Of a DNA stretch of 64,000 nucleotides, positions 26,503-28,114 are shown one piece after another. The notes under the pieces are model-generated. The model was not told the DNA's origin. It did not search any database and worked only from the letters and a program-made list of their open reading frames with translations. Numbering within the stretch: the first letter of the stretch is position 1; each line of letters starts with the position of its first letter. The DNA comes from Saccostrea echinata (lineage: Eukaryota): positions 2,418,001-2,482,000 of the forward strand of contig NW_026889756.1 in assembly GCF_033153115.1 (NCBI RefSeq). Reading direction: 5' to 3'. A program made the position numbers and the translations under genes.

Positions 26503-27804
26503 CTATCCATCGTCACGTGTCGACTTTCGTGCTTTTCTACTTGAGTTGCTAGGTTTCCTGGTGTTTTTTTTTTTTTTTAGATCTTTGATCATCTCTGAAA
26601 CGTCCATTTGTGTCGAGTCTTTGCCCCGCATTCTGGATGTAGACGCAGACCTTGCAGATGGTCTAGAGCGTAGACGTGAAGCCACTTCTCCAATAATCAT
26701 ACCCAGGTTGTTTTTTCCAGGCCACGACTTGGAACGAGTCTGACTTGTCTGTTTTGCGTCAAGTCCAGATGCCCAAAAATTGTCATACGTCGTTTCTACG
26801 AACACAGTAGGATTTTTTGAGCTTTTTAGCGTGTCGGCAAAGGTTGGAAGCTGAGCAGCTTTGGCTTCAATTATCTCAGCCATCAAGGACACCTGATTGG
26901 TAACAAAGCTAGGAGAAGGAGTGACCATATTGCCGATTCTCTTCGCTTCCAGAGCCGATTTTGCCGATTGGATAGCCGATGCTCGTGGAATGTCGCCGCT
27001 TCTCATTGCTTTTACATATTGATATGCATGTTCGGCTGATTTGTGGTCAAAGCCAAAGATGTTTATATTGCAAGGGTAGAAATTTGATAGACAGTTTGCC
27101 TCTCCAGAGAATGGAACAACATCGACATTTGGCTCTGTAAAGTGTTCACATTCTGCGTCGCCTGGCTTATGCCCTTCTAACTTGCATACTTTCCACCTTG
27201 GATTGTTAGGACAATCTTTTTTGAAATGCGAGTCTTACCAGCACTGGGTACAAAAAGGGATGCGTTTATTTGAGGGCTGTCCATAATGATAAATGAAACA
27301 TTTTAGGCCTGCGCATATGCTAGTCCGTGGGAGAAAATTCCCGGCCTGCAGAGCTTTCACATAAATAAATCTATTGCCATTTAGAATTCCTGTCATCTTA
27401 TGAGTTTCCGGGTGACGGATTTTCTCATATTTGAGCTCACTAGTAAAGCTAAGATTGAATTTTTGAAGCATTTTCATCACTTCATCATCGTCAACGGATA
27501 AAGGGACACCCTTGACCGTTATTTTCATAACATCCTCATTTGGGCTAGAAATACCCGCAGAAAAGGGGTTTATATCGTAAATCTTCACACTGATATTTCG
27601 AATCTCAAAGCCTTCGTGTAAAAGTTTCACTCGGTTTTCCAAACTGTTTACATAGAACCTCTAAAGATCACGATCTTTTTGTACACATTTAAGATCTTGC
27701 ACACATGAAGCCACAGCAATCGACAACTCATAGTCTGTAATTCTATTGTTATTTTCATGAGGAAGCTCAGAGTTTTTCACATATACAGGTTTTAACATTT
27801 CCAT
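26503..27804 (-). pseudogene. LINE ORF1 (gag-like: RRM-like region, two CCHC-type knuckles, C-terminal NADAR/YbiA-like domain)
   Basis: Single reading frame from ATG 27804 to the stop at 26503 with two premature stops (27661-63, 27235-37): MEMLKPVYV..KITVKGVPLSVDDDEV..CTQCW*DSHFKKDC..WKVCKLEGHKPGDAEC..CLSNFYPC..SAEHAYQYVKA..EAKRIG..VETTYDNFWASG..WPGKNNLGMII. Confidence 0.85.
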
Positions 27805-28114
27805 TGTTATTGTTTTTGCTATCAATAGAACTGTTAGAACCGTTAGAGTTATCTCTCGGTGAAGAGTATTCAACCGAACACAGCGAACACAGGTATAGGC
27901 TACTGAGCAGTGCTCAGTTACTCAGATCCGAAGAGAGAAAAAAAGATTTAGACGATGTTTATTATTGAAAAAAAAATTGTAAATAATTTAAAAGGTGATG
28001 AGGATAATAAAGAAAACAGTGATGATGAAATTATCTTCAGTTTTGTAGTAACTCAGTGTCATAAATTATTGAAACTGTGTACATAGATTAAACCAACTAA
28101 TAATAAATCTGATC

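Follow-up and report, generated by a model that had tools for sequence, protein, structure and literature searches.

A YbiA-type NADAR domain in the ORF1 protein of an L1/Tx1-like LINE of Saccostrea echinata

The ORF1 protein of a LINE from Saccostrea echinata carries, behind its nucleic-acid-binding modules, a NADAR domain of the YbiA type that has kept the equivalents of the catalytic residues. The copy described here lies in a stretch of 64,000 nucleotides (contig NW_026889756.1, positions 2,418,001 to 2,482,000; hereafter the window, to which all positions refer). In the intact ORF1 proteins the modules follow each other as two RRM-like folds, two CCHC knuckles, the YbiA-type NADAR and a basic tail, with ORF2 (endonuclease, reverse transcriptase, zf-RVT) downstream. 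LINE ORF1 proteins are regarded as nucleic-acid chaperones. The presence in such a protein of a conserved domain with a predicted catalytic site suggests that nucleic-acid ADP-ribosylation acts on animal retrotransposons. We propose, with a probability of roughly 45%, that the domain is an active N-glycosidase that removes ADP-ribose from bases and in this way shields retrotransposition from ADP-ribosyltransferases.

The window contains a LINE with this domain in ORF1 (about 23065-27949, minus strand), bounded by a TSD of 11 bp. From its 5' to its 3' end the features are:

27950-27960, minus strand: 5' copy of the TSD, AAACATCGTCT, an exact 11-mer found at both junctions
27805-27949, minus strand: 5' UTR of the LINE, reaching from the TSD to the ORF1 ATG; alignments of same-family copies begin at query position 1
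26503-27804, minus strand: ORF1, 433 codons plus stop, with in-frame stops at 27661-27663 and 27235-27237 (translation; colinear with intact relatives)
27277-27790, minus strand: two putative tandem RRM-like folds, approximate limits (colinearity with the modelled intact relative L007)
27211-27252, minus strand: CCHC knuckle 1, C-x2-C-x4-H-x4-C, with a stop codon inside it in the window copy (sequence; zf-CCHC at the same place in the relative L038)
27148-27195, minus strand: CCHC-type knuckle 2, C-x2-C-x4-H-x6-C in relatives, lacking the first Cys in the window copy (alignment with relatives)
26668-27120, minus strand: NADAR/YbiA-like domain (Pfam, PDB profile match, fold match, residue tally)
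26506-26667, minus strand: basic, Ser/Lys/Arg-rich disordered C-terminal tail with one short helix (predicted model)
23590-26480, minus strand: ORF2 remnants with many frame breaks (Pfam matches)
25699-26019, minus strand: APE fragment of ORF2 (Pfam Exo_endo_phos, E 4.4e-5)
24632-25156 and 23976-24560, minus strand: RT fragments of ORF2 (RVT_1, E 1.1e-4 and 4.8e-13)
23719-23727, minus strand: site of an internal deletion in the C-terminal part of ORF2, where about 0.8-1.1 kb is missing relative to other same-family copies
23065-23125, minus strand: A-rich 3' tail of the LINE (sequence inspection)
23054-23064, minus strand: 3' copy of the TSD, AAACATCGTCT, directly after the A-rich tail

The element has the features of an L1/Tx1-type LINE, namely an A-rich 3' tail with a TSD, and an ORF2 that combines APE, RT and a C-terminal zinc-binding part (as fragments in the window, intact in the relative L038). 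It is an L1/Tx1-like LINE, the Tx1 label resting on a report on oyster homologues (PMC12477816). Its subfamily has about 10 copies in the genome (91-97% identity) and is extinct. At the deletion site the other same-family copies all have 795-1123 bp where the query passes from position 4224 to 4232. The window copy is an old, inactivated insertion that cannot itself make the ORF1-NADAR protein, as two in-frame stops interrupt its ORF1, its ORF2 has broken up into fragments and a deletion has removed about 1 kb.

A preliminary description of this DNA had placed the domain inside a TSD-bounded element and not in a neighbouring gene, in line with the exact 11-bp repeat at both ends, and had read ORF1 (27804-26503) as one frame through two stops. 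Both stops could be located within the 433 codons, and the peptide quoted in that description is present on the minus strand. Of the two CCHC knuckles that it placed before the NADAR domain the positions stand, but neither is intact, knuckle 1 being interrupted by a stop and knuckle 2 having lost its first Cys; at the position of knuckle 1 the intact relative L038 matches Pfam zf-CCHC with E 9.9e-6. In the alignment the window ORF1 runs colinear with intact Crassostrea ORF1s and with those of its own genome, 403-489 aa long. Its last piece (27234-26506) is open, the 242 codons occupying 26506-27231 (minus strand). The C-terminal tail is modelled at a pLDDT of about 50, with its helix at residues 211-221 of the 242-aa piece.

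The AF2 model of the L007 ORF1 (pLDDT 89.6) matches RRM structures at residues 1-86 and 94-178 with Z 7.4-8.3 and rmsd of about 2-2.6 Å; a Z near 8 is suggestive of RRM-like folds and is not proof of them. Type I LINE ORF1 proteins reportedly consist of RRM and CCHC knuckles in the classification of Khazina and Weichenrieder. The same succession of RRM fold(s) and CCHC knuckle(s) is seen here, its RRM part at the suggestive level just given, and the two RRM-like folds and then the two knuckles make up the N-terminal two thirds of the ORF1. To our knowledge, the canonical type I protein ends after the knuckles and the type includes no enzymatic domain; the esterase type is the sole enzyme-bearing ORF1 type that we know to have been described.

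The domain behind the knuckles is a genuine NADAR of the YbiA type, as the preliminary description had recognised. The Pfam NADAR profile (PF08719, DUF1768; cutoff 35.1 bits) matches the window piece with E 4.1e-20 and 73.1 bits over profile positions 9-163 of 163, corresponding to 26668-27102 (minus strand). For seven intact ORF1s the E-values run from 1e-20 to 1e-24, and intact relatives score 72-87 bits. A family profile searched against the PDB retrieved the NADAR of P. nicotianae in complex with ADP-ribose (8bau, E 4.8e-17) and E. coli YbiA (2b3w, E 5.6e-11); these matches were obtained by the family profile only, a single-sequence phmmer search of the PDB with the window piece returning nothing. 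A comparison of an AlphaFold model with solved NADARs, suggested at the outset, points the same way. The model exceeds a pLDDT of 90 over the NADAR domain and has the alpha-helical core with small flanking beta sheets of the YbiA-like fold, and 8bau and 2b3w were the sole structures matched by Foldseek (prob 1.00, TM 0.71 and 0.72). VIA-align of the whole ORF1 model gave Z 18.2 and rmsd 2.1 Å over 157 residues against 8bau, and Z 16.3 against YbiA. The ORF1 NADAR has in common with these two enzymes the fold, the Glu/Lys/Glu set and the motifs LSNF, SxEHxxQxxKA, AKxxG, E...D..W and GxNxLG, at 24-28% identity. While 8bau and YbiA are free-standing enzymes, the ORF1 NADAR follows RRM and CCHC modules within a single transposon protein.

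Residue equivalences were mapped via the 8bau alignment and the data of PMC11543638, and were tallied over 137 domains. The window copy keeps the Glu of KSAEH and the Lys of YVKA (27007-27042, minus strand) and the Glu of VFVET (26764-26805, minus strand), equivalent to E43, K50 and E125 of P. nicotianae; the claim that the conserved acidic residues are present was thus correct. The Glu (E43, or E88 in the E. coli C7 NADAR) and the phosphate-binding Lys (K50, or K95) are the residues by which a catalytic NADAR is recognised, and mutation of any of the three residues in the C7 enzyme abolishes catalysis (PMC11543638). A Glu at the E125 position marks the YbiA subfamily, BC4488 having Asp and phage NADARs His at this place (PMC11543638), and the window ORF1 has the Glu. 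The E43 equivalent is found in 134 of the 137 domains, that of E125 in 123, and the K50 position is Lys in 113 and Arg in 5 more. The W133 equivalent, present in the window copy, also occurs in 134 of 137. Over the whole ORF1 alignment the active-site motifs form the most conserved columns. Because the loop between the E125 and D130 equivalents (from the second Glu to Asp-x-x-Trp) lacks one residue relative to 8bau and YbiA, HMMER puts the E125-equivalent Glu one residue out of register; we infer the equivalence of the VFVET Glu from motif and fold. The W89 equivalent is Phe in the subfamily of the window copy, and conservation of the R79 equivalent fails in register. The shorter loop, the Phe and the R79 position were counted as points against a counter-defence role.

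At least 150 NADAR matches were found in the same genome (923 Mb). About 40 of these fall into ORF1 frames that are open over 380-500 aa, and some of the open ORF1s are followed by an open ORF2 with APE, RT and zf-RVT. In L038, for example, an ORF1 of 455 aa precedes an ORF2 of 1259 aa, in which the domains Exo_endo_phos (E 8.6e-18), RVT_1 (E 8.5e-33) and zf-RVT (E 1.8e-7) were recognised. Among 75 cluster representatives of 300-800 aa, taken at 50% identity, 57 have a CCHC knuckle immediately upstream of the NADAR, and all same-family copies that reach the region carry the domain. This recurrence, both in copies of the same family and across many diverged families whose ORF1 and ORF2 are intact, agrees with the initial view that the NADAR belongs to the element. 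Among named homologues, the ORF1s come closest to uncharacterized proteins of C. angulata (XP_052685275, 77% to family L007 in the NADAR region), M. gigas (K1QZF9) and C. virginica. A FastTree tree of the 137 NADAR domains, labelled by the upstream knuckle, was uninformative, since many of its sequences are fragments, support is lacking on 57 of 134 branches and an outgroup is missing.

The dN/dS calculation on the domain that had been recommended speaks against neutral evolution. Between families dN is 0.24-0.55 with dS saturated, and omega is 0.2-0.25 where computable. NG86 dS was undefined for most between-family pairs, and therefore codon-position distances were used; third positions differ at 0.62-0.71 per site and second positions at 0.12-0.33. 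Third positions near saturation at such dN values indicate purifying selection on the NADAR domain, as strong as that on the RRM/knuckle part of ORF1.

The preliminary description knew of no account of the architecture, allowed that one might exist, and had named earlier annotation as a finding that would take away the novelty. Such an account exists, and novelty is limited accordingly: YbiA-family NADARs have been reported in the ORF1 proteins of several Crassostrea gigas Tx1 LINE families (PMC12477816, Genome Biol 2025). The architecture of these Repbase families is the same, with the NADAR in the C-terminal part of ORF1, whereas the window element comes from another genome and another subfamily. 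The report devotes one sentence and a supplementary alignment to them and does not analyse the structure of the domain, its catalytic residues, its copy number, the selection on it or host transferases. The present analysis contributes evidence on the catalytic residues and on selection, on the structure, and on how widely and in what context the domain occurs. It also describes Gypsy LTR retrotransposons of Ectocarpus that recruited a YbiA-family NADAR. There the domain stands at the N-terminus of Pol and not in gag/ORF1, in another class of element, and has its best matches in bacteria, which the authors regard as a separate acquisition (PMC12477816).

In the role that we propose, the RRM and knuckle modules would hold the NADAR on the nucleic acids of the element, where it would free guanine, and possibly cytosine, of ADP-ribose in the LINE RNA, the nascent cDNA or the nicked single-stranded target DNA, so that nucleic-acid ADP-ribosyltransferases would no longer block retrotransposition. 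The obvious candidate source of such transferases is the bivalve-concentrated CARP-1 family, with bacterial pierisin-like toxins second. Counter-defence by erasure of base ADP-ribosylation, which the preliminary description had proposed together with packaging of the eraser in the RNP, is plausible. The proposed logic, a parasite-borne eraser of guanine ADP-ribosylation against a nucleic-acid ADP-ribosyltransferase, is that of the DarG1/DarT1-associated NADARs and the "orphan antitoxin" NADARs of phages (PMC11543638, PMC11825919). The bacterial and phage antitoxins differ in the residue at the second Glu position, which is Asp in the BC4488 type and His in the phage type, and in binding ssDNA by a basic N-terminal extension where ORF1 has RRMs and knuckles. 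Unlike the DarTG1 system, the ORF1 NADAR belongs to a eukaryotic host.

The chemistry of an N-glycosidase does not fix the substrate, as YbiA proper acts on intermediates of the riboflavin pathway. An active NADAR could thus process the RNA of the element itself, removing an NAD- or ADP-ribose-derived modification at the 5' or 3' end or another N-glycosidic adduct, with no part in counter-defence. Such a role was proposed generically for the NADARs of RNA viruses and extended to oyster Tx1 and Ectocarpus Gypsy (PMC12477816), and the conserved catalytic residues, the adjoining RNA-binding modules and the NADAR in the polyprotein of an oyster RNA virus would all fit it. We nevertheless consider it rather unlikely: no NADAR substrate of this kind is known, the demonstrated activities on nucleic acids all being base de-ADP-ribosylation (PMC11543638, PMC12945103), and a NADAR ORF is also linked to MULE, a DNA transposon without an RNA intermediate, which indicates a shared need beyond RNA processing.

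Less probable still is a domain without catalysis that reads nucleic acids or ADP-ribose, or that is a structural module in place of the C-terminal domain by which other ORF1 proteins assemble their RNP. Its C-terminal position and the ADP-ribose-contacting positions that differ from 8bau (R79 out of register, W89 replaced by Phe in the window subfamily) would suit such a module, but not the retention of the three residues essential for catalysis in the E. coli C7 NADAR in 82-98% of 137 diverged domains, nor the concentration of conserved ORF1 columns in the active-site motifs. The Glu of the YbiA subfamily, to which the enzymes acting on riboflavin intermediates belong, could be taken to point to metabolite repair, or the domain could be a host-gene passenger irrelevant to transposition. 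This is very improbable, since a passenger is expected to decay, whereas the domain stays in frame across families with saturated third positions, under a constraint equal to that on the RRM/knuckle part, and occurs in no fewer than 57 of the representatives clustered at 50% identity. The broken state of the window copy, and nothing else, speaks for a chance similarity or for a neighbouring host gene or exon outside the LINE. With an E-value of 4e-20 and a fold Z of 18, a domain in frame with the knuckles within a TSD-bounded unit, always the same arrangement at no fewer than 150 loci, linkage to intact ORF2 and its presence in same-family copies, we regard that explanation as ruled out and its residual chance as negligible.

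Hydrolase activity of the ORF1 NADAR, if demonstrated, would tie the poorly understood CARP-1 transferases of bivalves to genome defence and would carry the bacterial DarT/NADAR conflict over to eukaryotic mobile elements. The question is tractable, as the domain comprises some 150 residues and defined substrates with G- or C-ADPr are already available. It may also be, though we hold this to be a speculative and on balance doubtful extension, that base ADP-ribosylation (e.g. by CARP-1) serves oysters, and perhaps bivalves as a whole, as a genome defence or antiviral system, against which parasites of unrelated kinds (Tx1-like LINEs, a MULE family and a nidovirus) independently recruited NADAR erasers. 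If this is true, the arms race between bacterial DarT1 and phage NADARs has its counterpart in eukaryotes.

CARP-1 homologues occur mainly in Bivalvia, and on ssDNA as well as ssRNA both G- and C-ADPr are reversed by NADARs, those of the YbiA type included (PMC12945103). Guanine-ADPr is hydrolysed by YbiA-type and eukaryotic NADARs, and reactive riboflavin intermediates by YbiA and its plant homologues (the latter as background in PMC11543638). The Pacific oyster nidovirus PONV1 encodes NADAR/YbiA-like domains (PMC12377751). Together with the MULE-linked NADAR, the bivalve CARP-1, the activity on ssDNA and ssRNA and the nidovirus domains form a circumstantial case for counter-defence that is stronger than the preliminary description could make it. 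A search of the genome with Pfam Enterotoxin_a (PF01375) and ADPrib_exo_Tox (PF03496) gave 0 matches, as it did in the control genomes, and is therefore uninformative; one PF01129 ecto-ART-like ORF without a PDB relative was found.

Two NADAR loci of 31% identity, at one point considered as host genes, proved to belong to a repeated family in which the NADAR is linked to a MULE transposase. A search of one such MULE-linked locus of 8 kb yielded no terminal inverted repeats. In this second mobile-element family of the genome, the NADAR ORF is paired with the MULE transposase at a minimum of seven loci, and the NADAR is a separate accessory ORF of the phage-like His variant.

ORF1 of the LINE copy forms one frame of 433 codons (27804-26503, minus strand), which is interrupted by two in-frame stops (27661-27663 and 27235-27237). 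The peptide in which the preliminary description saw a NADAR/YbiA-like domain is found exactly in the last open piece (27234-26506, minus strand), and NADAR (PF08719) is the sole Pfam family matched there by hmmscan. The match (E 4.1e-20; 73.1 bits, curated cutoff 35.1) spans profile positions 9-163 of 163, i.e. 26668-27102 on the minus strand; each piece of the broken frame was searched separately, and the two upstream pieces of ORF1 gave no Pfam match with hmmscan. The NADAR observation is confirmed at a level well beyond chance. The two CCHC-type knuckles that had been read immediately upstream of the domain are also there, but both are damaged in this copy. The features of the copy are as follows.

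Features of the LINE copy in the window
27950-27960 and 23054-23064, minus strand: 11-mer target-site duplication (TSD) AAACATCGTCT, flanking both ends of the unit
27211-27252, minus strand: CCHC-type knuckle 1, with one in-frame stop inside it
27148-27195, minus strand: CCHC-type knuckle 2, first cysteine missing
25699-26019, minus strand: APE endonuclease fragment, downstream of ORF1
24632-25156 and 23976-24560, minus strand: reverse transcriptase fragments, downstream of ORF1
ending at about 23065, minus strand: A-rich tail, 3' end of the copy

Given the A-rich tail and the flanking 11-mer, the unit is a TSD-bounded LINE insertion of ~4.9 kb; the duplication encloses ORF1 and the ORF2 remnants, and the NADAR domain thus lies within the element, as had been proposed. 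The APE and reverse transcriptase remnants are scattered across many broken frames. Searched at the DNA level, the assembly from which the window comes (923 Mb) yielded about ten copies of the same family at 91-97% identity, and the NADAR part is kept in every one that extends into the ORF1 region. All of them hold an extra 0.8-1.1 kb at ~23719-23727, where the window copy is deleted. No intact ORF1 occurs among the scored copies of this subfamily in the genome, and the subfamily looks extinct. In the 3' UTR, before the A-rich tail, a GC-richer stretch (ccagggagctcctggcaccccaggtgagg...; 23130-23240, minus strand) contains short self-complementary segments and might be a candidate 3' recognition stem.

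The window instance is a dead member, from another oyster-like genome, of the NADAR-ORF1 LINE kind known from Crassostrea gigas Tx1. A study of Ectocarpus transposable elements (Genome Biol 2025), which found a Gypsy lineage whose Pol contains a YbiA-family NADAR, had already described NADAR in ORF1 of these Tx1 elements, in one sentence and a supplementary figure (PMC12477816). By the preliminary description's own yardstick of prior annotation, the novelty it had allowed for the architecture is therefore lost. A full-text literature search found no other paper tying NADAR, DUF1768 or YbiA to LINE ORF1.

The structural reading of the ORF1 domain as a NADAR is right, as anticipated. A profile built from 21 ORF1s matches two PDB entries, the Phytophthora nicotianae NADAR with ADP-ribose (8bau; E 4.8e-17) and E. 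coli YbiA (2b3w; E 5.6e-11), and the same two are the only Foldseek matches of the AlphaFold model of the 242-residue window piece (target-normalised TM 0.71 and 0.72, respectively), in which pLDDT exceeds 90 throughout the NADAR domain. In the model of an intact ORF1 from another locus of the genome (L007; 441 aa, mean pLDDT 89.6), residues 228-394 superpose on 8bau with Z 18.2 (rmsd 2.1 A, 157 residues) and on YbiA with Z 16.3, and residues 1-86 and 94-178 give RRM matches (Z 7.4-8.3).

The key residues E43, K50 and E125 of the P. nicotianae enzyme correspond to E88, K95 and D171 of the E. coli C7 NADAR, mutation of which abolished guanine de-ADP-ribosylation (PMC11543638). Transferred onto the ORF1s via the 8bau alignment, they fall in the window copy on Glu in KSAEH, Lys in YVKA and Glu in VFVET. 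Among 137 NADAR domains from this genome and the database representatives, E43 is conserved in 134, K50 in 113 (plus five with Arg), E125 in 123, K75 in 125 and W133 in 134, in agreement with the conserved acidic residues noted earlier. The Glu at the E125 position assigns the domain to the YbiA subfamily, whereas DarT1-associated NADARs have Asp and phage NADARs His at this position. Compared with 8bau, the loop following this Glu is one residue shorter, the equivalent of W89 is Phe in the window subfamily, and that of R79 is not conserved in register. The ORF1 NADAR is probably catalytically active.

A six-frame search with the 151-residue domain yielded at least 150 NADAR matches in the genome (31-100% identity), and among those listed about 40 belong to open frames 380-500 aa long. 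Seven ORF1s of different families all match NADAR (E 7.5e-20 to 1.6e-24). Several diverged families have both frames open, e.g. at L038 (G000:C2:21470500-21480000), where a 455-aa ORF1 with zf-CCHC and NADAR is followed after 30 nt by an open 1259-aa ORF2 (Exo_endo_phos, RVT_1, zf-RVT). Some of these families have multiple copies with the same domain score (six or more in one family, all with open ORF1 frames), pointing to recent activity in this genome. Between families, NG86 dS is undefined or ~2 (synonymous sites being saturated) and dN is 0.24-0.55; omega is 0.2-0.25 for the pairs where it is computable. Per site, third codon positions differ by 0.62-0.71 and second positions by 0.12-0.33, and the constraint on the NADAR part equals that on the RRM/knuckle part. 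The knuckle-NADAR fusion is a property of many LINE families and is maintained by selection; the domain is neither confined to one copy nor evolving neutrally.

NADAR is also found beside a transposase of another type. At L039 (G000:C64:1692000-1700000) two head-to-head ORFs (2938-5058, minus strand, and 5043-7304, plus strand) encode a 706-aa NADAR protein and a 753-aa MULE/Mutator transposase. The former contains proline-rich tandem repeats; its NADAR domain (Pfam E 3.8e-24) carries His in place of the second catalytic Glu (E125 position), like the phage NADARs, and GDSL is matched weakly (E 0.027). The pairing recurs at at least seven loci, mostly decayed, and suggests a second mobile family, putatively a DNA transposon with an accessory gene for NADAR; the 8-kb locus showed no terminal inverted repeats.

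The fold, catalytic residues, selection and physical fusion to RNA/ssDNA-binding modules are shown; beyond these, the best-supported inference is that ORF1p would deliver an active glycohydrolase for base-linked ADP-ribose to the RNA or cDNA of the element or to ssDNA at the target site. That the ORF1 NADAR serves specifically as an eraser countering ADP-ribosylation is plausible, at a probability of roughly 45%. Guanine-ADPr is a substrate of eukaryotic and YbiA-type NADARs (PMC11543638), and on ssDNA and ssRNA both G- and C-ADPr are reversed by NADARs, among them YbiA-type enzymes and one from a sponge (PMC12945103). Orphan NADARs in phages reportedly defeat DarT1 (PMC11825919), and NADAR/YbiA-like and macro domains also occur in the Pacific oyster nidovirus PONV1 (PMC12377751). 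The nidovirus and the MULE-linked ORF fit a conflict; because DNA transposons move without an RNA intermediate, the MULE case mildly favours action at the DNA level or a general anti-defence role rather than RNA processing alone. What counts against the eraser reading is that no nucleic-acid ADP-ribosyltransferase was identified in the genome; the Pfam models PF01375 and PF03496 gave no match here but were also silent in control genomes, and so are uninformative. The only PF01129 (ART) match (36 bits) is at L041 (G000:C54:46133243-46136737; ORF 1282-2067, minus strand), a 261-aa R-S-ExE-type ADP-ribosyltransferase-like protein with a hydrophobic C-terminus and no sequence relative in PDB. The interest lies in a testable hypothesis and in several oyster genetic parasites converging on NADAR.

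When 1.84 billion cluster representatives were searched exhaustively with a profile, 16,057 proteins matched NADAR, and 95 of these reached E <=1e-30. Of the 150 top-scoring ones, 75 have lengths of 300-800 aa, and in 57 of these a CCHC knuckle immediately precedes NADAR; the knuckle-NADAR ORF1 group is therefore large and diverse. The close relatives that bear names are all from oysters (Crassostrea angulata XP_052685275, Magallana gigas K1QZF9 and others, C. virginica XP_022316717). Other fusions among the nearest relatives of the LINE domain (P0084, 666 aa; P0171, 749 aa; P0124 and P0126, 618 aa) comprise PHD + NADAR + GDSL esterase, NADAR + integrase (H2C2 + rve) and NADAR + TatD DNase, and three of the fusion proteins carry GDSL. 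PHD and esterase domains occur in other LINE ORF1 types. Finally, P0018 (535 aa, ENA) has a distant NADAR (25-34% identity) behind a long charged helical N-terminal part without CCHC knuckles, and is possibly a different ORF1 type with the same domain.
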